The position numbers and the translations under genes were made by a program. Shown here in pieces: positions 14,301-51,547 of a DNA stretch of 64,000 nucleotides. Position 1 is the stretch's first letter. The number at the start of each line of letters is the position of its first letter. The notes beneath the pieces are model-generated. The model ran no database searches. It worked only from the letters and a program-made list of their open reading frames with translations, and had not been told where the DNA came from. Origin of the DNA: Anaeramoeba ignava BMAN (lineage: Eukaryota > Protista > Anaeramoebae); assembly GCA_028826165.1 (NCBI GenBank), contig JAPDFW010000014.1:1-64000 (forward strand), given 5' to 3'.

Positions 14301-15794
14301 ATGGAAACTTATTCAAATTTAGAAAAACTTTCAAATGATTTAAAAAATTTATTTCAAAATCAAAATCAAAATCAAAACCAAGAAGAAAGTTATTTTGATT
14401 TTGAAATAATTTGTGAACAAAATAAAATTTCATTTAAAACTCATAAATCAATTCTTTCTTCAAGAAGTGAATATTTTAAAAATCTTTTCAAATCAAAAAT
14501 GAAAGAATATCAAGAAAATAAATTAATTCTTCAAGATGTTTCAAGTTCAATTCTATTTCCAATTTTGAATTACTTTTATTCAGGAAAAATTGAAATTAAT
14601 TTAGAAAATGCAATAGAAATTTTATTTTTTTCATCAAAATATTTAATTGATGAATTAATTGAAATTTGTTCAAATTTTATCAAAAACAATTTACAAATTG
14701 AAACTATTGTTGATATTCTTAAACTATCTGAAGCAATGAACTTCAATCAATTATTGGATTCTTCTTATCAATTTATTTTAGATAATTTTAAAGAATTTAT
14801 CAAAACTTTATTCTTTCTTGGACTTGAAGAAAATCATTTAAATTCAATTTTATCAAATGATGAAATTATAATAAATGAATTTGAACTTTTCCAATCAATA
14901 ATAAAATGGGGAAAACATAAATTGAATATTAATCATGAAAAAGAAATTAGAAAAGAAACATTACAAAATCAAATTTCAAATATTATTGATAAAATCAGAT
15001 TTATTGATTTTTCAGAACAAGAACTTGAAGATACATTAAAAGAAGATTTAATTCCAAATCAAACTTCACAAAAATTATTTGAATTCCAAAACCTTCAAAA
15101 TCAAAATAATACAAAAAAATTAAATCAATTTATTGAAAAAGAAAATTCATTAATTTTCCAACCAAGATTTAAATTAGATTCAGAAATTATTCAATCAAAA
15201 GAACATATTAAGAAATTAAAAGAATGGATAAATGATGATGATTTCTTTTCCAAAATGAAAAAAGGATTTTCAGCAAAAAGAGATGGGTTTTCTTCTAAAA
15301 CTTGGCATAAGGCAGTTGATGATAAAGGAAAAACATTAGTTATTATCAAAACCAAAGATAATTTTATTTTTGGAGGTTTTACTCAAATTGGATTCTTCCC
15401 AAAAGATAGATCAAAATGGAGTAGAGATTATACATTTAGAAATTATCGATTTGGAAGACAAAATGATCCGAATGCATTTATTTTTTCATTAAGAAATGAT
15501 GAAAATGATAGAAAACCAGAAAAGTTTACAATTAAACAAGATCAAAAATTATTTTCAATTTTTTCTCATTTAGATTATGGTCCATATTTTGGATGTGGGC
15601 AATTTTTTGGGTATGGGAATGATTTACCAGATTTTTGCTTATATTCTGATTTTAATAAACCTGGTTTGTCAAATTTTGGGCATAGTTACAATCTACCTAA
15701 TGAAATTAGTTATGAATCAAATGAGGCTGATAGTTATTTAGCTGGTTCTTTTAATGAATGGGTTATTGATGAACTTGAGACTTATTTCATTTAA
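14301..15794 (+). CDS. BTB/POZ-BACK-TLDc protein, intronless, 497 aa
   Basis: BTB: DFEIIC..FKTHKSILSSRSEYFKNLF..YFYSGKI. BACK: EFELFQSIIKW..IRF. TLDc: SAKRDGFS..WH..VDDKGKTLVIIKT..IFGGFT..AFIFSL..GPYFG..ELETY. Confidence 0.92.
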   Translation: METYSNLEKLSNDLKNLFQNQNQNQNQEESYFDFEIICEQNKISFKTHKSILSSRSEYFKNLFKSKMKEYQENKLILQDVSSSILFPILNYFYSGKIEINLENAIEILFFSSKYLIDELIEICSNFIKNNLQIETIVDILKLSEAMNFNQLLDSSYQFILDNFKEFIKTLFFLGLEENHLNSILSNDEIIINEFELFQSIIKWGKHKLNINHEKEIRKETLQNQISNIIDKIRFIDFSEQELEDTLKEDLIPNQTSQKLFEFQNLQNQNNTKKLNQFIEKENSLIFQPRFKLDSEIIQSKEHIKKLKEWINDDDFFSKMKKGFSAKRDGFSSKTWHKAVDDKGKTLVIIKTKDNFIFGGFTQIGFFPKDRSKWSRDYTFRNYRFGRQNDPNAFIFSLRNDENDRKPEKFTIKQDQKLFSIFSHLDYGPYFGCGQFFGYGNDLPDFCLYSDFNKPGLSNFGHSYNLPNEISYESNEADSYLAGSFNEWVIDELETYFI

Positions 15795-16429
15795 TTTCAA
15801 ATTATTTTTTTCAAAATTTAATTCAATTTTCATTTACTTTCAATCAAATTAATTCCTTCAAATAAATAAATAAGAAAAGAACCAAATTTTAAATAATTTA
15901 ATTTTAATTTAAAATTATTATTAAAAATTTGAATTAATGGAAAAAATTTAATCTAATAAAAAAATGAAAATTGAAAATAGAAATTAATAATAATTAAATT
16001 TCAATTCATTTATTAAAATATTAAAATAAAACAAATTAATGAAAACTTATTATTAAAAATATTTAAAATTCAATTTATATTTTTATTAAAATATTTATTC
16101 CACTTTTTTGAATATATTTTATTATAATTAAAATTGGATTAATAAATAATCAAAAATATTAATAAAATAAATGAAAATATTAATTAAATTTAAAATAAAA
16201 AGTATCTAAATTAATTTTTAATTAGTTATTATTAAAATAAAATATTTATATTTATCAAAATATTTCAATTTTCTTTTAAATATTATTTAGTTATTGGGAA
16301 TAATTTTATACTATTTTAAATAAAGAAATGTTAATAAAATATATAAAAAAGAATTAATTCCAAATCTAATTATTTAATAATCTTTATTCCATTTTTTAAA
16401 TAAATTAAGTAAATTATTTTTAAAATTAA

Positions 16430-17005
16430 AAAATATTAATTTATAGAAAATAAATAATAAATTATTATATTTAAATATTTTATTTATTTTCAATTTGAAT
16501 TTAAAAATATTGAAATTAAATAAATTAAAATTATTAAAAATAATGAAAAAATTAAATCAAAAATTAATCAAAATATAAATTATTTTTATAAAGAAAATAT
16601 TAATTTTTAGATAAATAATAAATTAATATATTTAAATATTTTATTTATTTTTAATTTGAATTTAAAAATATTGAAACTAAATAAATTAAAATTATTTTAA
16701 ATCAAAAATTAATCAAAATCATAAATTATTTTATAAAGAAAATATTAATTTTTAGATAAATAATAAATTAATATATTTAAATATTTTATTTATTTTTAAT
16801 TTGAATTTAAAAAATAATGAAACTAAATAAATTAAAATTATTAAAAATAATGAAAAAATTAAATCAAAAAATTAATCAAAATATAAATTATTTTATAAAG
16901 AAAATATTAATTTTTAGATAAATAATAAATTAATATATTTAAATATTTTATTTATTTTCAATTTGAATTTAAAAAATATTGAAACTAAATAAATTAAAAT
17001 TATTA
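16430..17005. repeat. Tandem satellite, about 145-163 bp, about 3.5 copies, upstream of FTHFS
   Basis: ATAAATAATAAATTA(A/T)TATATTTAAATATTTTATTTATTTT at about 16450, 16610, 16755 and 16917. Confidence 0.8.
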
Positions 17006-17088
17006 AAGGAAAATTTTTTTTTTCAATTTAAATTTTTCATTTTTTTTTTGATTAAAAAAAATTTAATAAAGAAAATAAAAAGAAAAAG

Positions 17089-19355
17089 ATGAAAAAATTA
17101 GAAATTAAAACACCAACACCAACAGATATTGAAATATCACAATCAAGTGAATTATTAACAATAGAAGAATTAAGTAAAGAAATTGGATTATTATCAAATG
17201 AATATGAAATACATGGAAAATATCGAGGAAAAATAACACTTGAAGTTTTAGAAAGATTAAAAAATCAAGAAAATGGAAATTATGTTTTAGGTTTTTATTA
17301 TTTTTTAAATTGATTTAAATTTATTATTTTTAATTGATTTGATTATTTTTAAATTGATTTGATTTAAAGTTACTGGTATTAATCCTACTTCTTTTGGTGA
17401 AGGAAAAACTACTACTTCTCTTGGTTTATCTCAAAGTTTAGGTGCTCATTTAAATAAAAAAGTTTTTACTTGTTTAAGATGTCCTTCAAGAGGTTTTTAT
17501 CATTTAAATAAAAATAAAAATCAAAATCAAAATTTAAAATTAAAATTAAAATTAAAATCAAAATCAAAATCAAAATCAAAATTTAAAATTAAAATTAAAA
17601 TCAAAATTAAAATCAAAATCAAAATCAAAATCAAAATCAAAATTAAAATTAAAATCAAAATTAAAATTAAAATTAAAATCAAAATTAAAATCAAAATTAA
17701 AATCAAAATCAAAATTAAAATTAAAATTAAAATCAAAATTAAAATTAAAATCAAAATCAAAATCAAAATTAAAATCAAAATTAAAATTAAAATCAAAATT
17801 AAAATTAAAATCAAAATTAAAAATCAAAATCAAAATCAAAATCAAAATTAAAAATCAAAATCAAAATTAAAATCAAAATCAAAATAAAAATCAAAATTAA
17901 AATTAAAATTAAAATTAAAATTAAAATCTAAAATCAAAATTAAAATCAAAATCAAAATTAAAATTAAAATCAAAATCAAAAATTAAAATCAAAATCAAAA
18001 TTAAAAATCAAAATTTAAAATTAAAATTAAAATCAAAATTAAAATCAAAAATCAAAAATTAAAAAGAATTAAAATCAAAATCAAAATCAAAATCAAAATT
18101 AAAATCAAAATTAAAAATCAAAATTAAAATTAAAAATCAAAATCAAAATCAAAAATCAAAATTAAAAATCAAACAAAAATCAAAATTTAAAATTAAAATC
18201 AAAATCAAAATCAAAATCAAAATCAAAATCAAAACTAAAATTAAAATCAAAATTAAAATCAAAATCAAAATTAAAATTAAAATCAAAATTAAAAATCAAA
18301 AATTAAAATCAAAATTAAAATCAAATTAAAAATCAAAATCAAAAATTAAAATCAAAATTAAAATCAAAATCAAAATTAAAATCAAAATCAAAATTTACTA
18401 AAATCAAAATTAAAATCAAAATTAAAATCAAAATTAAAAATCAAAATCAAAATCAAAATCAAAATCAAAATTAAAATCAAAAATTAAAATTAAAATTAAA
18501 ATCAAAATCAAAATTAAAATCAAAATCAAAAATCAAAATCAAAATCAAAATCAAAATCAAAATCAAAATTAAAATTAAAATCAAAATCAAAATCAAAATT
18601 AAAATCAAAATCAAAATCAAAATTAAAATCAAAATCAAAATTAAAATTAAAATCAAAATAAAAATCAAAATTAAAAATTAAAATCAAAATTAAAATTAAA
18701 ATAAAAATCAAAATTAAAATTAAAATCAAAATTAAAATCAAAATTAAAATCAAAATTAAAATCAAAATTAAAATCAAAATCAAAATCAAAATTAAAATTA
18801 AAATTAAAATCAAATTATTAGGACCAACATTTGGAATAAAAGGAGGAGCATCAGGAGGAGGTTTTTAATTCAAAAAGAAAAAGAAAAAGAAAAGAAAATA
18901 ATAACAAATAATAATTGAAAATAAAATAAAAAATAAACAGGATATTCACTTGTTGTTCCAATGGATGAATTTAATTTATTTCTTCCAGATATAGATGCAG
19001 TTTCAATAGCAAATAATTTATGTGCTGCAGCGATTGATACAAGAATGTTTCATGAAAGTTATCAAAAAGATATAGATTTATTTAATAGATTATGTCCTAA
19101 AGATAAAAATGGAAACAGATTATTTACTAAATCAATGTTAATAAGATTGAAAAAACTTGGAATTGAAAAACAAAAACCAGAAGATTTAACAGATTTAGAA
19201 ATTAATCAATTTTGTAGATTAAATATTGATCCTCAAACTATAACTTGGAAAAGAGTTGTTGATGTTAGTGATAGATATCTTAGAAAAATTACAGTTGGTC
19301 AATCTCAAACAGAAAAAGGAAGAATTCGTGAAACTGGGTAGATTATTTATTTATT

Positions 19356-19389
<34 letters not shown>

Positions 19390-22300
19390 AATTTTACATT
19401 TAATTAAGAAAGGAAATCAATTTATAAAATATTAATGAAATGAATTTATAAAATATCAAGGAAATGAATTTATAATTAATTTATAAAATATTAAAGAAAT
19501 TAATTTATAAAATATCAAAGAAATGAATTTATTTGAAATTAATTTATAAAATATTAAAGAAATGAATTTATAATTAATTTATAAAATATTAAAGAAATGA
19601 ATTTATTTGAAATTAGTTTATAAAATATCAAAGAAATGAATTTATAATTAATTTATAAAATATCAAAGAAATGAATTTATTTGTAATTAATTTATAAAAT
19701 ATTAAAGAAATGAATTTATTTATAATTAATTTATAAAATATTAAAGAAATGAATTTATTTAAAATTAATTTATAAAATATTAAAGAAATGAATTTATTTG
19801 AAATTAATTTATAAAATATTAAAGAAATGAATTTATAAAATATTAAAGAAATGAATTTATAAAATATTAAAAAAATTTTGAATATTAAATATTAATAGTT
19901 TTGATATTGCTGTAGCATCTGAAGTTATGGCTATTCTTGCACTTGCTAATTCTTTACAAGATTTAAGAGAAAGAATAGGAAGAATTGTTGTTGCAAGAGA
20001 TAAAGATTCAAGACCAGTATTTAATCAAAAAAAAATAATTTAGAAAAAGGAAAAGAAACTGAAAAAGAAAATATTTATTTTTTATCCGATTTTAATAAAA
20101 ATAATAATAAGGTTACAACAGAAGATTTAGGAGTAGCAGGAGCAATGACAGTATTACTTAAAGATGTTATTAAACCTAATTTAATGCAAACAATTGAAAA
20201 AACACCAGTTTTAGTTCATTCAGGACGTAAAATATTAAAATATTCAAATATTCAAATATTCAAAAAAATAATTGATTTTGATTTTGATTTTGATTTATTT
20301 ATTTTGATTTAGCATTTGCAAATATTGCTCATGGAAATTCTTCAATAATTGCAGATAAAATTGCATTAAAACTTGTTGGAAAAGATGGATATGTTGTTAC
20401 AGAAGCAGGATTTGGAGCAGGTAGATTAAAAAAAACACAAATTTTATTTGAAAAGAAAACAAAATTGATATAAAATTGATTTAAAATTAATTTAAAATTG
20501 ATATAAAATTGATATAAAATTGATATAAAATTGATATAAAATTGATATAAAATTGATATAAAATTGATATAAAATTGATATAAAATTGATATAAAATTGA
20601 TATAAAATTGATTTAAAATTGATTTAAAATTGATATAAAATTGATTTAAAATTGATATAAAATTGATTTAAAATTGATTTAAAATTGATTTAAAATTGAT
20701 TTAAAATTAATTTAAAATTGATATAAAATTGATATAAAAATTGATTTAAAATTGATTTAAAATTGATTTAAAATTGATTTAAAATTGATTTAAAATTGAT
20801 TTAAAATTGATTTAAAATTGATTTAAAATTGATTTTAAAATTGATTTAAAATTAATATAAAATTGATTTAAAATTAATATAAAATTGATATAAAATTGAT
20901 ATAAAATTGATATAAAATTGATATAAAATTGATATAAAATTGATATAAAATTGATATAAAATTGATATAAAATTGATATAAAATTGATATAAAATTGATA
21001 AAATTAAATTGATTTAAAATTGATATAAAATTGATATAAAATTGATTTAAAATTGATTTAAAATTAATATAAAATTGATATAAAAATTGATTTAAAATTA
21101 ATATAAAATTGATATAAAAAATATAAAATTGATTTAAAATTGATATAAAATTGATATAAAATTGATTTAAAATTGATTTAAAATTGATTTAAAATTGATT
21201 TAAAATTGATTTAAAATTGATTTAAAATTGATATAAAATTTATATAAAATTGATATAAAATTGATATAAAATTGATTTAAAATTGATATAAAATTGATAT
21301 AAAATTGATTTAAAATTGATATAAAATTGATTTAAAAATTGATATAAAATTGATATAATTAAAATTGATTTAAAATTGATATAAAATTGATTTAAAATTG
21401 ATTTAAAATTGATTTAAAATTGATTTAAAATTGATTTAAAATTGATTTAAAATTGATATAAAATTGATATAAAATTGATATAAAATTGATATAAAATTGA
21501 TATAAAATTGATATAAAATTGATATAAAATTGATATAAAATTGATATAAAATTGATTTAAAATTGATTTAAAATTGATTTAAAATTGATATAAAATTGAT
21601 TTAAAATTGATTAAAAATTGATTTAAAATTGATTTAAAATTGATTTAAAAATTGATATAAAAATTGATATAAAATTGATATAAAATTGATATAAAATTGA
21701 TATAAAATTGATATAAAATTGATATAAAATTGATATAAAATTGATATAAAATTGATTAAAAATTGATTTAAAATTGATTTAAAATTGATTTAAAATTGAT
21801 ATAAAATTGATTTAAAATTGATATAAAATTGATTTAAAATTGATATAAAATTGATTTAAAATTGATTAAAATTGATATAAAATTGATATAAAATTGATTT
21901 AAAATTGATATATAAAATTGATTTAAAAAATTGATATAAAATTGATGTAAAATTGATTTAAAATTGATATAAAATTGATTTAAAATTGATTTAAAATTGA
22001 TTTAAAATTGATATAAAATTGATATAAAATTGATATAAAATTGATATAAAATTGATTTAAAATTGATTTAAAATTGATTTAAAATTTATATAAAATTGAT
22101 ATAAAATTGATATAAAATTGATTTAAAATTGATTTAAAATTGATATAAAATTGATTTGTAAATTTAAAAAAAATATATATAAAAGATTGTGGAGCTGAAA
22201 AATTTTTTAATATTAAATGTAGATCAAGTGGATTAACACCAAATTGTTGTGTAATTGTATGTTCACTTCGAGCATTAAAAACACATGGAGGAATACCATT

Positions 22301-23025
22301 ATCTGAATGTAAAAAGCCAAATATTGAAGGAGTTATTAAAGGATGTTCAAATTTAAAACAACATATTGAAAACATATCAAAATTTGGAATACCAACAGTT
22401 GTTTGTATTAATCAATTCATCAACGATACAGACGAAGAAATTGCAGCAGTTATTACCGAGGCAAAAAAAGCAGGAGCATTTGATGCAGTTTCTTCTACTC
22501 ATTATGCAAGGGGAGGTGAAGGTGCAATTCAGTTAGCAACAAGTGTGATTGAAGCGTGTCAAATGAAAAACAATTTCAAGTTTCTTTATGAATTAAATCT
22601 TCCAATTAAATCAAAGATTGAGATTATTGCGAAGGAGATTTATCGGGCAGATTCTGTGAAGTATGAAGGAACAACTGAGGAAGATATTGAAAATTTTGAG
22701 AAAAATGGATTTGGAAATCTTCCAATTTGTATTGCTAAGACTCAGTATAGTTTTAGTCATGATCCTAAACTTTTGGGTACTCCAAATGGTTTTGTTTTTC
22801 CTATTAGAGAGATTAGAGCAAGTATTGGTGCTGGTTTTATTTTCCCTATTTCTGGAGATATTTCAACAATGCCTGGATTGGTAAAAACTAAATAAAATTT
22901 TTTTATCCGATTTTAATTTTAATTTTAATTTATTTTTAATTTTTAATTTTTAATTTTAGCCAACAAGACCTGCTTATTACGATATTGATATTGATGAAAA
23001 AGGAAATATTACTGGACTTTTTTAA
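17089..23025 (+). CDS. fhs: Monofunctional formate--tetrahydrofolate ligase (FTHFS), 9 exons, 620 aa
   Basis: Exons 17089-17290, 17370-17492, 18822-18860, 18941-19337, 19899-20016, 20112-20226, 20313-20420, 22186-22880 and 22960-23025 join in frame (1863 nt). Motifs [58 protein letters not shown] and MPGLPTRP. Confidence 0.95.
17515..18815. repeat. (AAAATY)n hexamer microsatellite filling FTHFS intron 2
   Basis: AAAATC/AAAATT mosaic seen directly; source of the spurious ILIL/FNFD ORFs. Confidence 0.95.
19420..19870. repeat. Minisatellite in FTHFS intron 4
   Basis: Repeated TTTATAAAATATTAAAGAAATGAA with variable linker. Confidence 0.85.
20461..22156. repeat. 11-bp satellite (AAAATTGATWT)n, about 150 copies, FTHFS intron 7
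   Basis: Seen directly; two variants GATAT and GATTT. Confidence 0.95.
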
Positions 23026-23970
23026 ATCAAAATTAAATCAAAATTAAATCAAAATAAAATTAAATTAAATCAAAATAAAAATTAAAATAAAAATTAAATC
23101 AAAATTAAAATTAAAATTAAAATTAAATAAATAAAAATTAAATTTCAAAATTTAAATTAAAAAAAAATTAAATTAAAATTAAATCAAAAAAATCAAAAAT
23201 TAAAATTAAATTAAAAATTAAATTAAAATTAAATTAAAAAATTAAATCAAAAATTAAATCAAAATTAAATCAAAATTTAAATTAAAATCAAAATTAAATC
23301 AAAAAAATAAAATTAAATTAAAATTAAATTAAATTAAAATTAAATTAAAAAATTAAAATTAAATCAAAAAAATTAAATTAAAATTAAATTAAAATTAAAT
23401 CGGATAAAAAAACCAAAATTAAATTAAAATTAAATCAAATTAAAAATCAAAATTAAATAAAAAAATAAAAAAATTAAAAATTAAAATAAAAAATTAAAAT
23501 TAAATTAAAATTAAAATTAAAATTAAAATTAAAATTAAATTAAAATTAAATTAAATTAAATTAAAATTAAATTAAATCCAAAATTAAATTAAATTAAATT
23601 AAATTAAAAAATTCAACCGAAAATTAAAATTAAAATTAAATCAAAATTAAATCAAAATTAAAATTTAAATTAAATTAAAATTAAAAATCAAAAATCAAAA
23701 TTAAATCAAAATAAAATTAAAATTAAATTAAAATTAAATTAAAATTAAATTAAAATTAAATCAAAATTAAATCAAAATTAAAAAAATTAAATCAAAATTA
23801 AATAAAAAAAAATTAAAATTAAATTAAAATTAAAATTAAAATTAAATTAAAATTAAATCAAAATTAAATTAAAATTAAATTAAAATTAAAATTAAATTAA
23901 ATTAAAATTAAATTAAAATTAAAATTAAAATTAAAATTAAATTAAAATTAAAATCTAAATTAAAATTAAA
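23026..23970. repeat. Low-complexity (AAATT/AAAATT/AAAATC)n intergenic array
   Basis: Seen directly between the convergent FTHFS and BUD31 genes. Confidence 0.9.
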
Positions 23971-24102
23971 TAAAATTTTTCATTTTCAAAATAATTTTTT
24001 AAATAAATTTAAATTCAAAAATAGTTTTATTATTTAAAATAATAATTAAAATTTTCTAAAAAAAAAATAAACGAAATAAAAGGAAAGAAGAATAAAAACA
24101 AA

Positions 24103-24714
24103 TCAACCACAACCACGACAACCACAATTAAAGCATTGAACAGGTTTTTGAGATTTCCTATCTTTTTTTGGAACTCTACAAATACAACAATTACCATGAG
24201 TTGTATCACGAGTTTGAATACATTGTAAACAACAAAGCCTTTCAAAACTAAAAATCCAAATTAGAAAATCAAATCAAAAGAAAATAATCTCATTGAAAAA
24301 CTTACCCAGGTTGTTTCCATTTTTCCATAAGAGGTCCATCTGCAATTTTATATTTTACACAATATTCAAATAATTCTTTTGATATTTCTTTTTTTTTATA
24401 ATACATTTCAAAAATATATCTTGATCTTTGATGATTTATTTGGAAAATTGGCCATAAAGCTTCATTCTTTCTTTTTCCTTGATGAGGTTGAGATTCAGCT
24501 TTATTTAAAGAAGAAAAAAAAAATTAAATTAAAAAATTAAATTAAAAAATTTAAATTAAAAAATTTTAAATTAAAAAATTTAAATTAAAAAATTAAAGTA
24601 ATTTTTAATTTAAAAATTACCTTCTCGCATTTTTTGGTCAAATTCTTCTATTTTATCTGATATAATTTCCCAACCTTTTGGAGGTTTAGTTTTTCTTCTT
24701 CTTGCTAAAGACAT
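24103..24714 (-). CDS. BUD31: Splicing factor BUD31/G10, 3 exons, 143 aa
   Basis: Exons 24714-24621, 24498-24306 and 24247-24103. PPKGWEII..FDQKMREAE..EALWPIFQINHQRSRYIF..KWKQPGFERLCCLQCIQ..CICRVPK..CFNCGCRGCG. Confidence 0.96.
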
Positions 24715-24719
24715 TATTT

Positions 24720-24790
24720 TTAAAAAAAAAATGAAAAAAAAAATGAATTTAAATTTTTTCATTTTTTTTCATTTTTTTTCAATTTTTTTA
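24720..24790. promoter_or_regulatory. Compact bidirectional promoter with back-to-back TTTTCATTTT clusters
   Basis: AAAATGAAAAAAAAAATGAA / TTTAAA / TTTTTTCATTTTTTTTCATTTTTTTTCA between divergent ATGs at 24714 and 24810. Confidence 0.65.
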
Positions 24791-24809
24791 AAAACAAAAA
24801 CAAAAACAA

Positions 24810-40490: not shown

Positions 40491-40502
40491 TGGAATTGAA
40501 AT

Positions 40503-41574
40503 TTATTTAATAAATGGAATATAAGTTGGTGTTTTTGAACGATATTTTCTGTATTCATCTCCAAAAAATTTAATTAAATTTAATTCTTCATCTTGAATTC
40601 TTTCATTGAAAAATTTCCATAAAATTATTGCAAAAGCAATTGGAGAAAGAATATTGCATAAAAATATTTGAGTTCCACAAGCCCAAATTAAAAATCCAAG
40701 ATAACCAGGATGTCTTATATATCTAATAAATAATAAAAAATTAAAATCGGATAAAAAATTAAAATTAAAATTAAAATTAAAAATTAAAATTAAAAATTAA
40801 AATTAAAATAAATTAAAATTAAAATTAAAATTAAAATTAAAATTAAAAATTAAAATTAAAATTAAAATTAAATTAAAATTAAAATTAAAATTTAAAATTA
40901 TAATTAAAATTAAAATTAAAATTAAAATTAAAATTAAAATTAAAATTAAAATTAAAATTAAAATTAATATTTAATATTAAAATTAATATTAAAATTAAAA
41001 TTAAAATTAAAATTAATATTAAAATTAATATTAAAATTTAAAATTAAAATTAAAATTAAAATTAAAATTAAAATTAAAATTAAAATTAATATTAAAATTA
41101 AAATTAAAAATAAAATTAATATTAATATTAATATTAAAATTAACTTATAAATTCCAAAATCAACTAATCTATGATTAAATCTCTTTTCTTCTTGAACTTC
41201 ATGAGTGAAATTATGTTGAGCAGTTATCATTGAAACTTTTCTAATAAGTTCACCAATAATAATTAATAATAATCCCAAAATTTGCATAAAACTATTTTGT
41301 TTAAAAGAAGAAATAAAAAAGGAAGATAAAATATATTCAGTTAATCCACCTAAAACTGAATAAGTATAATCCCAAGTTATCAAAGTTGCTAAAAATTTAA
41401 TTTTTAATTTTCAAAAAAATTAATCAAGTTTTTGTTTTTAAATTTTGCTTTTTTTTTTTTACATTCCCAACTTAAATGAGATGGATTATAAATATATGTT
41501 AATAAAACTTCTGATAAATGGAAAAAAAGATAAATTGTTATTAAAATTAAAAATGTTGCAAAAATCCCAAACAT
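40503..41574 (-). CDS. ICMT: Protein-S-isoprenylcysteine O-methyltransferase, 3 exons, 191 aa
   Basis: Exons 41574-41463, 41388-41145 and 40722-40503. FFHLSE, GELIRKVSMITAQHNFTH, HRLVDFGIYKYIRHPGYLGF.IW..GTQ, RIQDEE..LIKFFG.EY..Y..KTPT.IPFI. Confidence 0.95.
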
Positions 41575-41624
41575 TTTAATAAAATAAAAAAATGAAAAAA
41601 AATGAAAAAAAGGAAAAAAAAAGA

Positions 41625-42390
41625 ATTAATTTAAAAATATAATTTAATAATTAATTTAAAAATATAATTTAATATTTAATTTTATTATTAAAATATTTAA
41701 CATATAAATATAAAAAATGAAAATAGGTTTAATTTAATATTTAATTTATAAATTAATTTAAAAATATAATTTAATATTTAATTTTATTATTAAAATAATA
41801 ATTTATTGTTTTAGATTTAAATATTTTATTATTTAATTATTTAAACATATAAAAATATAAAAATAAGAATAGATTTAATTTAATATTTAATTTATAAATT
41901 AATTTAAAAATATAATTTAATATTTAATTTTATGTTTAAAAATAATAATTTATTGTTTTAGATTTAAATATTTTATTATTTAAATATTTAAACATATAAA
42001 TATAAAAAATAAGAATAGATTTAATTTAATATTTAATTTATAAATTAATTTAAAAATATAATTTAATATTTAATTTTATTAAAATAATAATTTATTGTTT
42101 TAGATTTAAATATTTTATTATTTAAATATTTAACATATAAATATAAAAAATGAAAATAGGTTTAATTTAATATTTAATTTAATAAATTAATTTAAAAATA
42201 TAATTTAATATTTAATTTTATGTTTAAAATAATAATTTATTGTTTTAGATTTAAATATTTTATTATTTAAATATTCAACATAAAAATATAAAAAAATAAG
42301 AATAGATTTAATTTAATATTTAATTTATAAATTAATTTAAAAATATAATTTAATATTTAATTTTATTATTAAAATAATAATTTATTGTTT
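41625..42390. repeat. Tandem satellite, about 145 bp, about 5 copies, between divergent ICMT and BTB-TLDc
   Basis: TAATTTAAAAATATAATTTAATATTTAATTTTAT at about 41652, 41755, 41901, 42047, 42189 and 42333. Confidence 0.85.
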
Positions 42391-42807
42391 AATTTTATGT
42401 TTAAAAATATTTTGAAAATTGATTTTTTTTAAATTAAAATTTTATCTTTTTTTTTGAATTAAATTGAATTAATATTAATTTGAAAATTTGTTTTAAAATT
42501 TAAATTTATTAATAATTTTTAAATTCCAAAAAAAAAAATTAAATTAAAAATTAAATTAAAATAATTTTCCTTTTTTTTTAATAAAGAAAATTAATAAAAA
42601 ATAATAATAATTTATTAATAAATTAATTTAAAATAATAAATTAAAAAGAAAATTAAATTAATTATTAATTTAAATTTATTCTCATTTTTTATATTTTTAT
42701 TTATTTTCAAAATCCACTTTTTTTATTCATTTTTTTTTTTTAAATTTTTTTTTTCATTTTTTTCCTTTTTTTTAAAACACAAAAACAAAAACAAAAACAA
42801 AAACAAA

Positions 42808-44381
42808 ATGGATAACAATAATAATAACCAAATTGAAAATCAAAATCAAAATCAAAATGAAAATGAAAATGAAATGAAAAATTTAGAAAAAAAAGTAACA
42901 AAAAATTTAATTAAAGATTATTCAAACCTTTTAAATGGAAATTTATTTAAAGATTTTTCAATTTTTGTTGAGAATAAATCAAATCCTTTTGAAATTAAAG
43001 TTCATAAATCAATTTTATCTTCAAGATCTCCTTTTTTTAATAAGTTTTTAAGAGGACAAAACGATATTAATAAGATTTTTTAAGACAATTTAATAAAAAA
43101 GAAATGGAATCAATTTTGAGTTATATTTATTATGGAAATATTTCTTTTGAGAATCAAGAAAATCTTCTCCAATTATTGGAAATTTCAATTTATTTTAAAT
43201 TAAATTTATTGAAAGAAATTATTCAAAAAAAAATTTTAAATTCAATTAATTATTCAAATTTTTTCCAATTTTTATTCCAAAATCGAAATTTAAATTCAAA
43301 TGAAATTGAAATAAAATGTTTTGAATTAATAAATCAAAATTTTTCCCAAATTCAGAATAATGAGAATTTATTCAATTTAACTAAAGAAGAAATTATCAAA
43401 TTTATTCAATTTAAACAAGAAAAAAAAGAAATTTTTCAATTTGATTTTTTTCAATTTTTAAGTAATTGGATTCAAAAAAGAAATAAGAGATTAAAAGGAA
43501 AAAGATTTAAGCACAAAATTAATGAAAAGAAAAGATTATTTCATTCTTTTTATTCATTATTTGATAAAGATTCAATTTCAAAACAAGATTTTGATAAATT
43601 AAAACAATTTGAAATTTTTCTTCCAAATTCTTTTTTAATTGAAAATCAAAAAAAAGTTATTCAAGATAAAGAGAAAGAAAATCAACAAATGAAAAAAGAA
43701 ATTGAAGCGAAAGAGAAAGAAATTGAAGATAAATGGAAGAAAGAAATCAAAGTGAAAGAAAAAGAAATTGAAGAGAAATGGAAGAAAGAAATTGAGAAAA
43801 TGAAGCCAAAAATAGAAATGGAATTTGGAAATATTTTTTCAGATTCAGAAATTATTAAAGATATTGAATATATTCAAAAATTAAAAGAATGGATAAATGA
43901 TAATGATTTATTTTCCAAAATGAAATTAGGATTTTCAGCAAAAAATGATGGATTTAATTCTCAAAATTGGCATAAAGCAGTTGATAATAAAGGAGAAACA
44001 TTAATTATTATCAAAACCAAAGAAAATTTTATTTTTGGAGGATTTACTCAAGTTGGATTTAATGGAAATTCAGGAAAAATTTATGATTCAAATGCATTTA
44101 TTTTTTCATTAAGAAATGATAAAGGAGATAGAAAACCTGAAAAATTTACTTATAAACAAGGAAAAGATGGATATGCAATTTATTCTCATTTAAGTAGAGG
44201 TCCAAAGTTTGGTGCAAATGATTTTTGGTTGAATTCTGAGTTACAACCTGGTTATTCAAATATTGGTCATAGTTATAATCCACCTAATGGAATTACTTAT
44301 AATACATATCAAGCTCAAAGTTATTTAGCTGGTTCTTATAATTCATGGGTTGTTGATGAACTTGAGACTTATTTCATTTAA
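42808..44381 (+). CDS. BTB-BACK-coiled-coil-TLDc protein (divergent BTB subtype); 1-nt deletion near 43080
   Basis: FKDFSIFV..IKVHKSILSSRSPFF. ATT TTT TAA GAC: adding one T gives IFLRQFNKKEMESILSYIYYG, joining ORF 43104. TLDc ends SYLAGSYNSWVVDELETYFI. Confidence 0.85.
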
Positions 44382-44809
44382 TTTTAAATTTTTCTTTTTT
44401 TTTTCAAAATCCAATTCAATTTTAATTTAATTTTAATCAAATTAATTTCTTTAAATTAATAAATAAGAAAACAAATCTAAATTTAAAAAAATAAAAATCG
44501 AAAATAGAAATTAATAATAATTAAATTTAAATTCATTAATTAAAATATTAAAATAAAAAAAATTAATTAAAATTTATTATTAAAAGTTATTTAAAATTCA
44601 ATTTATATTTTTATTAAAATATTTATTCCACTTTTTTTTCAAATATTTTATTATAATTAAAATTGAAATAATAAATAATCTAAAATATTAATTTAATCAA
44701 TAAAAATATTATTTCAATTTAAAATAAAATAAATTTAAATTAAATTCTTTTTAACTATTATTAAAATTCAATTTTTCTATTTATTAAAATATTTCAATTT
44801 TTTTTCAAT

Positions 44810-45220
44810 TTTATTTAATTATTGAGAATAAATTTATATTATTTTAAATAAAGAAATATTGATAAAATATATAAAATAAAATTAATTTTAAATTGAATTA
44901 TTTAATATTCTTTATTCCATTTTTGAAATAAATTAATTAAAATATTTTATTAAATTTATTAAATTATTGGGAATAAATTTATATCATTTTAAATAAAGAA
45001 ATATTGATAAAATATATAAAATAAAATTAATTTTAAAAAATTTGGATTATTCCATTTTAATAAATTTATTTTATTTTTTAAATAAATTAATTAAAATATT
45101 TTATTAATTTTATTTAATTATTGGGAATAAGTTTATATTAATCTAAATAAAGAAATATTGATGAAATATATAAAATAGAATTAATTTCAAATTGGATTAT
45201 TTAATATTCTTGATTTTATT
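44810..45220 (+). repeat. Three tandem copies (about 145-155 bp) of the BTB-TLDc upstream element
   Basis: TTATTG(A/G)GAATAA..TAAAGAAATATTGAT.AAATATATAAAATA at about 44820, 44965 and 45119. Confidence 0.8.
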
Positions 45221-45263
45221 TTTTAATTTTTTTCATTTTTCATTTTTCATTTTTTTATTTAAA

Positions 45264-46753
45264 ATGGAAACTTATTTAAATTTAGAAAAACTTTCAAATG
45301 ATTTAAAAAATTTATTTCAAAATCAAAATGAAAATCAAAATCAAAATGAAAACCAAAATGAAAGTTATTTTGATTTTGAAATAATTTGTGAACAAAAAGA
45401 AATTTCATTTAAAACTCATAAATCAATTCTTTCTTCAAGAAGTGAATATTTTAAATCCCTTTTTAAATCTAAAATGAAAGAATATCAAGAAAATAAATTA
45501 ATTCTAAAAGATGTTTCAAGTTCAATTCTATTTTCAATTTTGAATTATTTTTATTCAGGAAAAATTGAAATTAATTCAGAAAATGCAATTCAAATTTTAA
45601 TTTTTTCATCAAAATATTTAATTGATGAATTAATTGAAATTGTTCAAAATTTATCAAAAAGAATTTACAATTTGAAACTATTGTTGATGTTCTTAAATTA
45701 TCTGAATCAATGAACATAAATCAATTAATAGATTCTTCTTATCAATTTATTTTTGAAAATTTTGAAAAATTTATTAAAACTCCATTTTTTCTTGAACTTG
45801 AAGAAAATCATTTAAATTCAATTTTATTAAATGATAATATTCCAATAAAAGAATTTGGACTATTTCAATCAATAATAAAATGGGGAAAACATAAATCAAA
45901 TATTAATCAAGAAATGAATAAAAAAGAAAAAAAGAAATTACAAAATCAAATTTCCAATATTATTGATAAAATTAGATTTATTGATTTCTCAAAACAAGAA
46001 CTTGAAGAAACTTTGAAACAAGATTTAATTCCAAATCAAATTTCAGAAAAATTAATTGATTTCCAAATATTACAAAACAGAAATCAAAAAATCAAAAAGA
46101 ATTGGAAAAAATTAACACAATTTATTGAAAAAGAAAACTTATTAATTTTCAAAAGAAGAATAAAATTGAGATCAACAATTATTGAAGAAAAAGAACATTT
46201 TGATAAATTAAAAGAATGGATAAATGATAACGAATTCTTTTCCAAAATGAAATTAGGATATTCAGCAAAAAGATATGGATTTAATTGTAAAAACTGGCAT
46301 TCAGTAATTGATAATAAAGGAAAAACATTAATTATTATCAAAACCACAAACAATTATATTTTTGGAGGATTTACTTCAGTTGGATTTTTAAGTGATGAAA
46401 CAAAATGGAGTATTAAACGTTCTCCAATAAAAGGATGTATTAAAGATGAAGACGCATTTCTATTCAGTATCAAAAATCCAAGAAATGATCCTCCTCAAAA
46501 ATTTCCAATTAGAAAAGAAGAATCAGATAATGCAATTATGTATAATTTAGAAAATGGTCCAATTTTTGGATATTCTTCAGATTATCTTCAGAATGATATT
46601 TGCTTATATGGAAATCTTCAAGGTTACACAAATTTTGGTTGTAGATACACTCTTCCTAATGGATTAACTTTCAATACAAACAAAGCTAAAAATTATTTAA
46701 CAGGTTCTTTTAAAAAATGGAGAGTGAATGAACTTGAATGTTTTTTTATTTAA
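45264..46753 (+). CDS. BTB-BACK-TLDc protein; 1-nt deletion near 45640
   Basis: METYLNLEKLSNDLKNLFQ start, near-identical to the 50006-51547 gene. GAAATTGTTC here versus GAAATTTGTTC in paralogs. TLDc at the C-terminus. Confidence 0.87.
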
Positions 46754-46786
46754 AAACGAATTTTTTGATTTGGTTAAAAAAGAAAA

Positions 46787-48296
46787 TTATTTTTGAATAT
46801 GAATTATTGCTTTAAGTTTAATTTCTTTCTTGTTTTCTCCTTCTTCTAATTCAATATTAAATTCCAATCTTAAATTTAAGAATTTTTCTTTGATTTCTTC
46901 TTGAAGAGTAATAAATTCTTTAATATAAACTTTATTGTTATAAATTGCAATATTTGATGATTTCAAATCTTCGATTATTGTTTGTTTAGATGGACTTCCA
47001 CTTTGGAAAAAAGATTCTTGAAATTTTTGAACAATAAAATTAGTTGGAGAATTTTGATTTTCTAATAATGAAGATTCAAGAGAGAATTTTAAACTGTTGA
47101 TTTGAATTGAAGTTGAAGATAAATTTGTGAAAACAATAAAAACTTCAGTTTTTTCTTTTGTTTTGAAAATGGGATAATTTAATAAAGTAATTTTAGGTAA
47201 TTCTAATAATCCAAAATTTTGGATTTTAAATCGAACATTTTGTTGAAGATCAGGTTTAATAAGAGGATGTCCACAAGATAGACAAAGTCTTCCTTTCTTT
47301 GATTTGAGTTTAATTCTTTTTGGAAATAAATCCCTTAATTTTTTAAAATAAATTTTCAGATAAATTTTTGAATAAAATAAAATAAATTTTTTAAATTGAA
47401 TCAAATTTACTTCTCATTTTTTGGTTGATTTGGAATTTCTTGTAATTTTCGTTCTAAATTAATTGCTATAAATTAAAAATTAAAATTAAAATTCATTATA
47501 AAAATTAAAATTGAAATTCAAATTTACATTCATTTAAATCAATATTTCCAAATAATTCCTTTTTTTCAATTTCATCATCAATAATTGAATCTTTATCAAC
47601 ATTTTTACTTCTAATAATAACTTCTTTTTCTCTTTTTTCCAATTCATTTTCCAATTCAGAAACAGTAACTCTTTCTTTAGGATTATTTGACAAAACAGAA
47701 GAAAATTGAGTTGATAAAGATTGATTTGAAATGGGATGATATAAATAGTTTGATTTATAAGGAGAAGAAACCATTTTTAAAGGTGAATTTAAAGGTGAAT
47801 TTCTTGGAGATGAATATTTAAATAGATTTTTTGTTGGATTAATTTTCTTGTTATAATAATTAATCAACTGTTTCAGTTGCTTTTGATTTTCAACTGTAAT
47901 TTTTTGCTCCTTTTCATTCTGAATAATTATATTGATTAATGACTTAATATTTTCAGTTTCAATTCCAATTTCTTTAGTTGTCCAATTGCAATAATTGCAT
48001 TTTAAAGAATAACTTGATATAGTTTCATTTTGGTTTTCAACCATTGGCGAAAGTTGGCTAGAACATCTTGGACATTCAAAATGCTTTTGTGATTTTCCTT
48101 GTATTTGATTTATTTCTGATAATCCAAATGTGTCAAAACTAACTGGACAATAATATTGAATTATTTCTTCAAATGTGCAATTATTACAATAGAATTTCCC
48201 ACATGATTTGCAATAATAAGTATCTTCTGCCCCTACTTTCTCTCCACAATTACATTCATAGAGTATATTTACTTTATTTGCTTCAGGATTTAACAT
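46787..48296 (-). CDS. DCTN4: Dynactin subunit 4 (p62), 3 exons, 456 aa
   Basis: Exons 48296-47528, 47465-47411 and 47333-46787 join in frame. Cys pattern YYCKSC...CNNC..EEI..YYCP, HFECPRC...L, YSLKCNYCNWTTKEIG, and LFPKR..L.SK.GRLCLSCGHPLIKPD. Confidence 0.85.
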
Positions 48297-48344
48297 TTTT
48301 ATTTTATTATTTTTTTTTGAAAAGAAAAAAATGAATTTTAAAAA

Positions 48345-50000
48345 AATTGAAAAAAATATTTTTAATAATTTTAATTTAATTAATTTCAATATTTTTTAAA
48401 TTTATTTTGAAAATGAACGAAATATTTAAATTATTTAATTTAATATTGATTTGGAAATTTATATTTCTTTATAAATTAATTTTTAATTTTTTAATAATAT
48501 TTTTAATTAATTTTTTAATAATTTTAATTTAATTAATTTCAATATTTTTTAAATTTATTTTGAAAATAAACAAATTATTTAAATTATTTAAATTAATATT
48601 GATTTGGAAATTAATATTTCTTTATAAATTAATTTTAATTTTTTAATAATTTTTTTAATTAATTTTTTAATAATTTTAATTTAATTAATTTCAATATTTT
48701 TTAAATTTATTTTGAAAATAAACAAATTATTTAAATTATTCAAATTATTATTGATTTCAAAATTAATATTTCTTTATAAATTAATTTTAATTTTTAATAA
48801 TATTTTTAATTAATTTTTAATAATTTTAATTTAAATAATTTCAATATTTTTAAATTTAATTTTAAAATAAACAAAATATTTAAATTATTTAATTTATTAT
48901 TGATTTCAAAATTAATATTTCTTTATAAATTAATTTTAATTTTTAATAATATTTTTAATTAATTTTTAATAATTTTAATTTAATTAATTTCAATATTTTT
49001 AAATTTATTTTGAAAATGAACGAAATATTTAAATTATTTAATTTAATATTGATTTGGAAATTTATATTTCTTTATAAATTAATTTTTAATTTTTAATAAT
49101 ATTTTTAATTAATTTTTAATAATTTTAATTTAATTAATTTCCAATATTTTTTAAATTTAATTTGAAAATGAACAAAAATATTTAAATTATTTAAATTAAT
49201 ATTGATTTGGAAATTAATATTTCTTTATAAAGTGTTTTTGATTTTTTTAATAATTTTTTTAATTAATTTTTAATAATTTTAATTTAATTAATTTCAATAT
49301 TTTTAAATTTAATTTGAAAATAAACAAATTATTTAAATTGTTTAATTTATTATTGATTTGGAAATTTATATTTCTTTATAAATTAATTTCAATTTTTAAT
49401 TATATTTTTAATTAATTTTTAAATAATTTTAATTTAATTAATTTCAATATTTTTAAATTTAATTTGAAAATAAACAAATTATTTAAATTATTTAATTTAT
49501 TATTTATTCCAAAATTAATATTTCTTTTATAAATTGTTTTTAATTTTTAATAATATTTTTAATTAATTTTTAAATAATTTTAATTTAATTAATTTCAATA
49601 TTTTTAAATTTAATTTGAAAATAAACAAAATATTTAAATTGTTTAATTTATTATTGATTTTGAAATTAATATTTCTTTTATAAATTAATTTCAATTTTTA
49701 ATTATATTTTTAATTAATTTTTTAATAATTTTAATTTAATTAATTTCAATATTTTTTAAATTTAATTTGAAAATAAACAAATTATTTAAATTATCTAATT
49801 TATTATTGATTTGGAAATTTATATTTCTTTATAAATTAATTTCAATTTTTTAATAATATTTTTAATTAATTTTATTAATAATTTTAATTTAATTAATTTC
49901 AATATTTTTTAAATTTAATTTGAAAATAAACAAATTATTTAAATTGTTTAAATTAATATTGATTTCAAAATCAATATTTCTTTATAAATTATTTTTAATT
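48345..50000. repeat. Tandem satellite, about 150 bp, about 11 copies, upstream of DCTN4
   Basis: AATAATTTTAATTTAATTAATTTCAATATTTT at about 48361, 48513, 48666, 48815, 48965, 49114, 49270, 49421, 49571, 49721 and 49876. Confidence 0.9.
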
Positions 50001-50005
50001 TTTTT

Positions 50006-51547
50006 TTAAATGAAATAAGTTTCAAGTTCATCAACAATCCATGAAGAATAAGAACCAGCTAAATAACTATTTGCTTCATTTGTGTTAAAATCAATTCCAT
50101 TAGGCATATTGTAACTAAAACCAAAATTTGAAGCACCAGTTTTTAAATTTTTATTTAGAAAAAAATCGCACCAATATCCAAAAGCAGGACCATTCTCTAA
50201 ATAATTATAAAAAAGTGCAGTTTTTTCTTTTCCTTTTTTAATTGTAAATTTTTCAGGATTTCTATCATTTTTATCATTTCTTAATGAAAAAATAAATGCA
50301 TCTTTATCTAAAATATATATTCGTTCATCATAATAATCTTCATAATCTTCATCTTCATAATCTTCATAATCTTCATCTTCATCATAAATAAATTCATTCA
50401 ATTTTACTTCATTCCATTTTGATTGATCATTTGTAAATCCAACTGAAGTAAATCCTCCAAAAATATAATTATTTGTGGTTTTGATAATAATTAATGTTTT
50501 TCCTTTATTATCAACTTTATCATGCCAATTTTTACAATTAAATCCATCTCTTTTTGCTGTATATCCTAATTTCATTTTGGAAAAGAATTCGTTATCATTT
50601 ATCCATTCTTTTAATTTATCAAAATGTTCTTTTTCTTCAATAATTGTTGAAGAATTCAATTCAAATCTTGTTTTGAAAATTGATAAGTTTTCTTTTTCAA
50701 TAAATTCTTTTAATTCTCTTTTATCTTTTTCGTTTTGAAGTTTTTGGAATTGGATTAATTTTTCTGAAATTTGATTTGGAATTAAATCTTGTTTCAAAGT
50801 TTCTTCAAGTTCTTGTTTTGAGAAATCAATAAATCTGATTTTATCAATAATATTGGAAATTTGATTTTGTAATTTCTTTTTTTCTTTTTTATTCATTTCT
50901 TGATTGATATTTGATTTATGTTTTCCCCAGTTTATTATTGATTGAAATATTTCAAATTCATTTATTGGAAATTCATAATTTAATAAAATTGAATTTAAAT
51001 GATTTTCTTCAAGTTCAAGAAAAAATGGAGTTTTAATAAATTTTTCAAAATTTTCAAAAATAAATTGATAAGAAGAATCTATTAATTGATTTATGTTCAT
51101 TGATTCAGATAATTTAAGAATATCAACAATAGTTTCAATTTGTAAATTCTTTTTGATAAATTTTGAACAAATTTCAATTAATTCATCAATTAAATATTTT
51201 GATGAAAAAATTAAAATTTCAACTGCATTTTCTGAATTAATTTCAATTTTTCCTGAATAAAAATAATTCAAAATTGAAGATAGAATTGAACTTGAAACAT
51301 CTTTTAGAATTAATTTATTTTCTTGATATTCTTTCATTTTAGATTTAAAAAGAGATTTAAAATATTGACTTCTTGAAGAAAGAATTGATTTATGAGTTTT
51401 AAATGAAATTTGATTTTGTTCACAAATTATTTCAAAATCAAAATAACTTTCATTTTGGTTTTCATTTTGATTTTGATTTTGATTTTGATTTTGAAATAAA
51501 TTTTTTAAATCATTTGAAAGTTTTTCTAAATTTGAATAAGTTTCCAT
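50006..51547 (-). CDS. BTB-BACK-TLDc protein, intronless, 513 aa, acidic loop insertion
   Basis: Intact ORF with the same motifs as the 14301 gene; DEDEDYEDYEDEDYEDYYDE loop inside the TLDc domain. Confidence 0.92.
   Translation of the reverse strand: METYSNLEKLSNDLKNLFQNQNQNQNQNENQNESYFDFEIICEQNQISFKTHKSILSSRSQYFKSLFKSKMKEYQENKLILKDVSSSILSSILNYFYSGKIEINSENAVEILIFSSKYLIDELIEICSKFIKKNLQIETIVDILKLSESMNINQLIDSSYQFIFENFEKFIKTPFFLELEENHLNSILLNYEFPINEFEIFQSIINWGKHKSNINQEMNKKEKKKLQNQISNIIDKIRFIDFSKQELEETLKQDLIPNQISEKLIQFQKLQNEKDKRELKEFIEKENLSIFKTRFELNSSTIIEEKEHFDKLKEWINDNEFFSKMKLGYTAKRDGFNCKNWHDKVDNKGKTLIIIKTTNNYIFGGFTSVGFTNDQSKWNEVKLNEFIYDEDEDYEDYEDEDYEDYYDERIYILDKDAFIFSLRNDKNDRNPEKFTIKKGKEKTALFYNYLENGPAFGYWCDFFLNKNLKTGASNFGFSYNMPNGIDFNTNEANSYLAGSYSSWIVDELETYFI

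Follow-up and report, generated by a model that had tools for sequence, protein, structure and literature searches.

Gene conversion with a tract ending inside the TLDc domain as the probable origin of a mosaic pair of BTB-BACK-TLDc genes in Anaeramoeba ignava

Two neighbouring genes of Anaeramoeba ignava, 45264 and 50006, are nearly identical in their 5' part and very different in their 3' part, and this mosaic was most probably produced by non-allelic gene conversion without crossover, the tract ending where homology collapses: a case of ordinary concerted evolution. There is no pointer to a dedicated shuffling mechanism. Both genes lie in a window (the whole stretch of DNA analysed, 64,000 nucleotides of contig JAPDFW010000014.1) with two further relatives, 14301 and 42808. 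Genes are named by their lowest coordinate and divided, as in the initial annotation, into segments A (the BTB-BACK side), B (the first half of TLDc, up to the GGFT..GF strand) and C (its second half).

Four BTB(-BACK)-TLDc genes had been annotated at the places listed in Table 1, and Pfam agrees. The two frameshifted genes, 42808 and 45264, were searched in separate pieces. All four genes scored between 48 and 77 bits with the TLD profile (PF07534, cut-off 24.5), and the BTB profile (PF00651, gathering cut-off 20.5) was passed by 14301 (80.8 bits), 50006 (81.8 bits) and the first pieces of 45264 (74.8 bits) and 42808 (25.4 bits). BACK (PF07707) scored 34 to 44 bits in 14301, 45264 and 50006, and the BACK profile search of the 42808 pieces gave no match. 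For 14301, the Pfam values are 1e-22 (BTB), 2e-11 (BACK) and 2e-12 (TLD). The N-terminal modules are of two unrelated kinds, which we call type 1 (14301, 45264 and 50006) and type 2 (42808).

Table 1. Coordinates of the features discussed (window positions unless a contig is named)
Feature	Position	Strand	Description
14301	14301-15794	+	Intact type-1 BTB-BACK-TLDc open reading frame, 497 aa
14301 segments	A 14301-15179; B 15180-15395; C 15396-15791	+	
3' flank module of 14301	15795-17005	+	162/307-bp repeats (TRF)
Duplicated block	27578-51580		Collinear, inverted, with C112 from 155900 to at least 180000 (blastn)
42808	42808-44381	+	Type-2 BTB-TLDc gene, reading frame broken
42808 segments	B 43845-44060; C 44061-44378	+	
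45264 (X1)	45264-46753	+	Type-1 gene, 1-nt deletion relative to 50006
45264 segments	A 45264-46171; B 46172-46387; C 46388-46750	+	
50006-like tract in X1	45250-46387	+	Mismatch map; triplet test
Linker patch in X1 tract	46010-46130	+	Twin-like, unconverted; mismatch map and triplet test
Dynactin p62 gene	46787-48389	-	Between the inverted pair; Pfam Dynactin_p62 1.5e-13
50006 (Y1)	50006-51547	-	Intact type-1 gene, 513 aa
50006 segments	A 51547-50651; B 50650-50435; C 50434-50009	-	
Syntenic twin X2	C112:160858-162351		
Syntenic twin Y2	C112:155982-157475		

The initial annotation described 45264 and 50006 as nearly identical in A and B and very different in C, and the identities bear this out: 95% nt and 90% aa in A, 95% and 93% in B, 66% and 50% in C. 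The switch falls at 46387/46388, with dense mismatches starting exactly at 46388, directly after GGFTSVGF; in 50006, the loop past this motif carries an acidic D/E/Y insertion. Genome-wide, 50006 is the nearest relative of 45264 in A and B (94%, the runner-up reaching 85 to 88%), and the C half of 45264 is kin to the genes at C112:160858 (78% aa), its syntenic twin, and C111:113516 (72% aa).

The locus occurs a second time, on contig C112, and this twin is part of that copy, which could be either a segmental duplication or a haplotig that has diverged. Positions 41624-51580 are collinear with C112:166269-155947, with gene order and orientation unchanged, and the C112 copy was used as an outgroup for X1 and Y1, with the dynactin p62 gene as an internal control of divergence. 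This gene differs from its C112 counterpart by 11 substitutions in 1503 coding nucleotides and by none in its 100-nt intron; ordinary genes in the duplicated block are 0.7 to 0.8% diverged, and the twin of 42808 (C112:163507-164777) is 98.6 to 99.7% identical to it. The type-1 twins, in contrast, are 4 to 27% diverged, with a dS of 0.13 to 0.35, 15 to 40 times that of the neighbouring genes, and a dN/dS of 0.7 to 0.9. Given that dS is raised in the twins while ordinary genes are so little diverged, whole tracts must have been replaced, rather than selected point changes merely accumulated. Positive selection by itself does not explain why the twins diverged, since dS is up as much as dN.

With the twins as reference, the history of 45264 can be read along its length. 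In the quartet test, informative sites before alignment column 1500 group X1 with Y1 and X2 with Y2, rather than each gene with its twin, by 29 to 9, and the ratio turns to 2 to 39 after column 1600, a flip across the junction with Fisher p=2.9e-11. In the triplet test, X1 is Y1-like at 86 sites and twin-like at 23 inside 45311-46349, and Y1-like at 13 and twin-like at 252 outside (chi-square 217, the highest of 200 permutations being 30). X1 thus resembles Y1 over approximately 45311-46349, and its twin in both flanks, in the linker patch and in the C half. FastTree trees of the single segments recover Y1 as the sister of X1 for A and B, and X2 for C. In BACK and B, X1 and Y1 are 97 to 99% identical, against 85 to 89% between twins. 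Their dS is 0.036 in A, 0.074 in B and 0.47 in C (an N being set at the frame break of 45264 in the codon alignment), and synonymous and non-synonymous sites were replaced jointly in the tract. That recombination or gene conversion had shaped this pair, as first proposed, is thereby supported by the comparison with the syntenic twins.

The 50006-like tract begins some 15 to 40 nt upstream of the ATG and ends with the last residue of GGFTSVGF. It is interrupted by the linker patch, which shows a 15-nt indel and dense mismatches relative to 50006. What had been taken for an A/B junction in this pair is therefore an unconverted patch within one conversion zone, with the same partner on either side. 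The shared A tract is closer to Y2 in BACK and closer to X2 beside the linker, and the direction of conversion is ambiguous. The locus being fully collinear with its twin, neither crossover nor inversion took place, and an inversion by crossover between the inverted repeats is ruled out in the same way.

In the mechanism that we propose, 45264 and 50006, convergent neighbours forming an inverted pair around the dynactin gene, would have been homogenised over a stretch of about 1.1 kb that opens shortly before the ATG and closes with the GGFT..GF strand. The short indel-bearing linker patch would have been skipped by conversion, and past the B/C junction heteroduplex would no longer be tolerated, such that the C halves and all flanks would have retained their original identity. 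Most likely, the tract ends here because the family's nucleotide similarity breaks down at this point, together with variation in length. Interlocus gene conversion between tandem or inverted paralogues is a known source of concerted evolution in multigene families. Like it, the present case combines a tract of near-identity within diverged DNA, a conflict between phylogeny and synteny, and no crossover; close copies are favoured, and tracts stop where homology drops. We see no essential difference, the special features here being that a duplicated locus allows the event to be dated and that conservation drops very steeply inside a single protein domain.

The family to which these genes belong is specific to A. 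ignava and comprises several hundred genes, at roughly 600 loci. A sequence search at E<=1e-20 gave 286 matches, and all of the 120 that were listed come from this species; the type-2 A module of 42808 has at least 150 relatives (64 to 97% aa, the majority 75 to 90%). The main text and supplement text of the A. ignava genome paper do not mention a family of several hundred BTB-TLDc genes. In public annotation, most of the proteins are called 'pep-cterm sorting domain-containing protein', a label that is probably wrong.

Family-wide recombination analyses covered 74 type-1 genes; type-2 genes were compared at the protein level only. Mean nucleotide identity in the family is 0.90 in A, 0.84 in B and 0.72 in C. 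At the B/C junction, per-site entropy rises from 0.38 to 1.66, and the loop that follows ranges from 10 to 44 residues. Mean dS climbs smoothly from 5' to 3' along type-1 genes (BTB 0.115, BACK 0.17, linker 0.23, B 0.26, C 0.42). Across the family, homogenisation by conversion is strongest in the 5' part and weakest in the 3' part, and the C half stays diverse. The TLDc core glycines and the C-terminal Leu/Glu positions are invariant in the family alignment. Significant tracts mostly link physically adjacent genes. Tracts stop repeatedly at the B/C junction, and independent pairs from C111 and C104 do so at the same column: the identity of C111:109953 and C111:113516 is 99% as far as column 1571 and 68% past it, and tracts in the C104 cluster have edges at columns 1332-1373 and 1578.

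Three other scenarios were considered. The first is a dedicated combinatorial system, in which modules A, B and C are swapped at two preferred junctions, and selection or a specific mechanism favours new combinations, yielding diversified receptors. Modules do recombine, as a few type-1 genes with type-2-like segments indicate: in one (L003) B alone is type-2-like (93% aa), and in another (L025) both B and C are (92% and 80%). Likewise, had the A types separated cleanly, one change of A-type label would suffice, but the B tree requires 9 and the C tree 19. Tract ends are also enriched at the two proposed junctions (11/57, against 7.4% when placement is simulated as uniform; about 2.6-fold, p=0.003), so that this part of the expected clustering holds; however, these ends are not independent, five coming from one cluster and the whole representing about five loci, and the other 46 of 57 (81%) lie elsewhere rather than being confined to the junctions as three-cassette shuffling implies. 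Moreover, distance matrices of adjacent blocks are scarcely correlated anywhere along the gene and show no block structure, which, with the gradual rise in dS, speaks against a discrete three-segment architecture. Swapping B, a conserved segment (84% nt), would add little diversity, and no donor archive or signal sequence was noticed in passing. Shuffling had also been expected to yield new combinations; in the window, conversion instead homogenised the conserved A and B and made two genes more alike. Finally, the junctions coincide with homology drops and indels, so that a special mechanism is unneeded. Altogether, we consider such a system improbable.

Older exchanges are difficult to trace in this family. 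PHI is not significant family-wide (p=0.06), four-gamete incompatibility stays near 50% whatever the distance, and old events are therefore indistinguishable from homoplasy in a family that is star-like; for AU tests, in which each segment's tree is rejected on the other segments, the star-like shape likewise leaves little weight.

The second scenario is an artefact of assembly or polishing, in which reads of one paralogue built or polished the other into a chimeric consensus and the frameshifts are homopolymer errors. The published assembly combines Nanopore and Illumina reads (PMC11550330), and both frameshifts lie in T runs: 42808 has a 1-nt frameshift in a T6 run at 43076-43081, where its C112 twin has T5, plus a 4-nt deletion, and 45264 lacks a T at 45639. 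We nevertheless hold this to be highly unlikely, as the two copies still differ at about 3 to 5% of sites, which are clustered, the mosaic pattern repeats at unrelated loci, and unique flanks bound the tract on both sides within 1.5 kb, an easy distance for long reads. Exact look-ups of a 347-aa piece of 45264 and of the 50006 protein in other assemblies, from which the genome itself was possibly excluded, came back blank. If the frameshift in 45264 is genuine, one of the conversion partners may be a pseudogene.

The last scenario, no recombination at all, with strong purifying selection on A and B and a fast C making recent duplicates alike in front and unlike behind, is scarcely credible for 45264 and 50006: it accords with the strong rate heterogeneity in the family and the non-significant PHI, but it is contradicted by the quartet and triplet tests and leaves unexplained why 45264 goes with its twin in the flanks and C yet with 50006 in A and B, why X1 and Y1 exceed the twins in identity in BACK and B, and why synonymous divergence between twins so exceeds that of neighbouring genes.

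Such rate heterogeneity does fully account for the similarity among 14301, 42808 and 50006, which in B, C and the 3' flank is the family average. The C half of 50006 had been matched to those of 14301 and 42808; it shares 54% and 63% aa with them, where family means are 58 to 60%, and at E<=1e-40 it finds no locus in the genome. As for 14301 and 42808, their A modules are indeed unrelated (29% aa), and B (87% nt), C (77% nt) and the 3' flank (about 75%) are all alignable as noted, but a specific kinship does not follow. Among 77 type-2 genes ordered by similarity to 14301, 42808 comes 59th in B and 27th in C, and 22 of 72 other type-1 genes in B, and 7 of 72 in C, are nearer to 14301 than 42808 is. 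The nearest relative of the 14301 C half is at C137:281775 (76% aa), and the C half of 42808 groups among type-2 genes (72 to 80% aa). In a DNA search of the genome, more than 30 loci, of both types, align over the full length of 15180-16500 at 68 to 79%, and tandem arrays on C93 and C137 align with its 3' part. The 3' flank of 14301 is a satellite module that lies beside more than 100 family loci with either A type, 42808 among them.

The question arises as to what these proteins do. The AlphaFold model of 14301 (pLDDT 82.5) has a BTB-BACK fold similar to those of adaptors in Cul3 complexes, with TM scores by target of 0.62 for KLHL11 (4ap2), 0.79 for A55-Cul3 (6i2m) and 0.70 for KLHL3-Cul3 (4hxi), and the A. 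ignava genome holds at least seven cullin loci. The type-1 genes have a BACK domain after BTB, and the model of 14301 has a fold like that of Cul3 adaptors, the two features by which a BTB-BACK adaptor is recognised. Domains and predicted fold suggest that the proteins may be CRL3-type substrate adaptors, the variable C half of TLDc being the putative recognition part. None of the solved TLDc chains matches by sequence.

Cullin-3 or SCF adaptors whose recognition domains vary have expanded in particular lineages, as the MATH-BTB genes of nematodes and grasses and the F-box genes of plants show. As in A. ignava, the N-terminal, ligase-docking module is conserved and the C-terminal domain attached to it evolves fast, and the copies, clustered and species-specific, number in the hundreds, many of them pseudogenes. 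Here, however, the variable module is TLDc rather than MATH, Kelch or LRR, the organism is an anaerobic metamonad amoeba, and a single pool of TLDc domains serves two unrelated BTB-side modules. The same three-domain architecture occurs in insects, where Bombyx mp and Drosophila CG7102 are single-copy developmental genes (bioRxiv 10.1101/2021.07.26.453796), against several hundred copies in A. ignava, and the ESM Atlas contains arthropod clusters with it. The TLDc proteins Oxr1, NCOA7, TLDC2 and mEAK-7 bind V-ATPase (PMC8608904; see also PMC8804929 and PMC9263379). The A. ignava genes likewise carry a Pfam TLD domain; their C half, however, is hypervariable, whereas that of the binders is conserved.

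On a speculative reading, which we think rather doubtful, the family would be an inherited library of CRL3 adaptors maintained by recombination, with the hypervariable C half of TLDc as a surface recognising targets such as symbiont, prey or parasite proteins; the step after GGFT..GF would be held by selection, so that conversion refreshes docking and scaffold without erasing specificities.

Returning to gene conversion, the pair 45264/50006 offers a clean and dated view of the evolution of a very large adaptor family, and turns the reading of the locus from three-segment shuffling into ordinary concerted evolution with a homology-defined boundary. Conversion would keep the conserved docking end uniform and leave out the putative recognition end. 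If the C half of TLDc is a binding surface, the family would represent a new variable-recognition scaffold in a eukaryote that manages bacterial symbionts.

Four genes of the family lie in the window, whose DNA is extremely AT-rich (GC about 15%). Each comprises a BTB(-BACK) segment (A), the N-half of TLDc up to the motif GGFT..GF (B) and the C-half (C); the N-terminal module is of one kind (type 1) in g14301, g45264 and g50006, and of another (type 2) in g42808.

Family genes and related features in the window
Feature	Position	Strand	Remark
g14301 (type 1)	14301-15794	+	intact, 497 aa
g42808 (type 2)	42808-44381	+	frame broken, T6 run at 43076-43081
g45264, or X1 (type 1)	45264-46753	+	one T missing at 45639 relative to g50006
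g50006, or Y1 (type 1)	50006-51547	-	intact, 513 aa
Weak BTB-like fragment	6703-6879	-	40% identity to type-1 BTB over 63 aa
162/307-bp repeats	16430-17005		downstream of g14301, within 15795-18814
AAATCA hexamer array	17506-18814		downstream of g14301, 215 copies

No GT..AG intron accounts for the frame break of g42808 or of X1, and we compared both genes piecewise, each ORF piece being a separate query. The T6 run corresponds to T5 in the twin of g42808 on contig C112 (the frame would be intact with T4 or T7), and this twin is also missing four A, at 43225-43228. These one-nucleotide breaks in T runs may mark either pseudogenes or homopolymer errors.

The initial annotation described X1 and Y1 as nearly identical in A and B and very different in C, and this description is borne out: identity is 95% nt and 90% aa in A, 95% and 93% in B, and 66% and 50% in C. 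The similarity starts 15 to 40 nt upstream of the ATG, is broken by a linker patch rich in mismatches and indels (46057-46118), and ends exactly after GGFTSVGF, at 46387. Genome-wide, Y1 is the closest relative of X1 over A and B (94%, the next best being 85 to 88%), while in C, X1 belongs to a small subtype together with its syntenic twin X2 and C111:113516. The deviant element in the pattern is the C half of X1.

Window positions 27578-51580 are collinear, in inverted orientation, with C112 from 155900 to at least 180000, which provides syntenic twins of X1 and Y1 (X2 and Y2) as a natural outgroup. The block measures at least 24 kb, and its collinearity stops about 35 nt upstream of the Y1 ATG, which places its edge at the conserved 5' end of a member of the family. 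Either a diverged haplotig or a segmental duplication, produced by family genes recombining with one another, could account for it. Between the two copies, the dynactin p62 gene differs by 0.7% (11/1503 nt), ORF2 of g42808 by 0.8% (10/1278 nt), and ordinary coding sequence, like an intron of 100 nt, by 0 to 0.8%; AT-rich intergenic DNA (window 41600-51700) differs by 4 to 6%, and low-complexity DNA seems to change much faster than coding or intron sequence in this block. X1 and X2 differ by 4% in BTB and 12 to 16% elsewhere, and Y1 and Y2 by 4 to 27%. The twins' dS of 0.13 to 0.35 and dN/dS of 0.7 to 0.9 rule out a mere build-up of selected point changes, and show tract-wise sequence replacement.

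Two tests locate this replacement. Quartet sites grouping X1 with Y1 and X2 with Y2 outnumber those grouping each gene with its twin by 29:9 before column 1500, and the ratio flips to 2:39 after column 1600 (p=2.9e-11). In a triplet test that takes X2 and Y1 for the possible parents, X1 resembles its twin in the 5' flank, the linker patch (about 46010-46130), C and the 3' flank, and Y1 over 45311-46349: Y1-like and twin-like sites number 86 and 23 inside this interval, versus 13 and 252 outside (chi-square 217, with a maximum of 30 among 200 permutations). As gene order is moreover unchanged relative to the C112 locus, we conclude that the mosaic is a conversion without crossover between two convergent genes separated by about 4 kb.

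Directly after GGFT..GF, per-site entropy rises from 0.38 to 1.66 and the loop that follows varies from 10 to 44 residues, such that conversion tracts requiring homology would be expected to halt at the B/C junction. In the predicted structure of g14301 (pLDDT 82.5), this junction appears as the end of a beta-strand followed by a variable hairpin; the modelled BTB-BACK part resembles adaptors solved with Cul3, and the A. ignava genome holds at least seven cullin loci.

The resemblances proposed for g14301 and g42808 fared less well. Their amino-acid identity is 76% for B and 62% for C, but the link is not specific: among 77 type-2 genes, g42808 ranks 59th in B and 27th in C by identity to g14301, 22/72 (B) and 7/72 (C) other type-1 genes are closer to g14301, and the common 3' flank is a repeat module that recurs next to numerous loci of either type and also occurs in tandem arrays. 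Nor does the C half of Y1 specifically match these genes (54% to g14301 and 63% to g42808, versus family means of 58 to 60%). C-half identity is 67% within type 2, 56% within type 1 and 58% between types; the more conserved type-2 C halves therefore look similar to everything. The 162/307-bp and AAATCA repeat kinds also flank family genes on other contigs, with long arrays on C93 and C137. The 5' flank of X1 (45021-45212), unrelated to that of Y1, is 82 to 89% identical to those of g14301 and the C112 twin, which may reflect a promoter module in common.

The type-1 module has at least 86 full-length relatives (68 to 80% aa) and the type-2 module at least 150 (64 to 97%, mostly 75 to 90%), the two kinds giving no BLAST alignment to each other; a first-look genome search matched the TLDc C half to about 600 loci. 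A 522-aa ORF (C112:143924 onwards), only 41% identical to g14301 over almost all of the latter, probably represents a third, more distant branch. Among the matches listed, 120/120 homologues come from A. ignava and bear M0811_ locus tags; the majority are named 'pep-cterm sorting domain-containing protein', and the remainder carry 'E3 ubiquitin-protein ligase', 'BTB' or 'TLDc' names. The first label, present in NCBI and UniRef, is at odds with the BTB and TLDc domains, and seems to be an annotation error that has been propagated. The BTB-BACK-TLDc architecture is already known from insects (bioRxiv 10.1101/2021.07.26.453796), and is also found in arthropod and fungal clusters; the main and supplement text of the A. 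ignava genome paper, as far as consulted, do not mention the family.

Does the three-segment pattern extend to the whole family? Among 74 type-1 genes, an LLR scan for shared tracts gave 27 to 31 significant pairs, mostly of physically adjacent genes; type-2 genes were compared as proteins only. Several tracts stop at the proposed junctions: a C111 tandem pair is 99% identical up to column 1571, then 68%, and a C104 cluster has tract bounds at columns 1332-1373 and 1578. Overall, 11/57 internal tract ends are no more than 20 columns away from a junction, versus 7.4% for uniformly placed tracts simulated with the same detector (p=0.003, the pairs not being independent). The remaining 46 are scattered, correlations between the distance matrices of neighbouring blocks are low throughout (0 to 0.34), and family mean dS climbs smoothly along the gene (BTB 0.115, BACK 0.17, linker 0.23, B 0.26, C 0.42). 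The four-gamete test shows incompatibility of about 50% whatever the distance, and the PHI test yields p=0.06. On the B tree the A-type label switches 9 times and on the C tree 19 times, versus about 50 with shuffled labels. On sequence comparison, module exchange is clearer in two cross-type chimeras than in anything in the window: both are type 1, one (C7:81426-82844) with a TLDc that is type-2-like in B and C (92% and 80% aa), the other (C24:116886-118346) in B only (93% aa). The family is only partly built of three shuffled segments.
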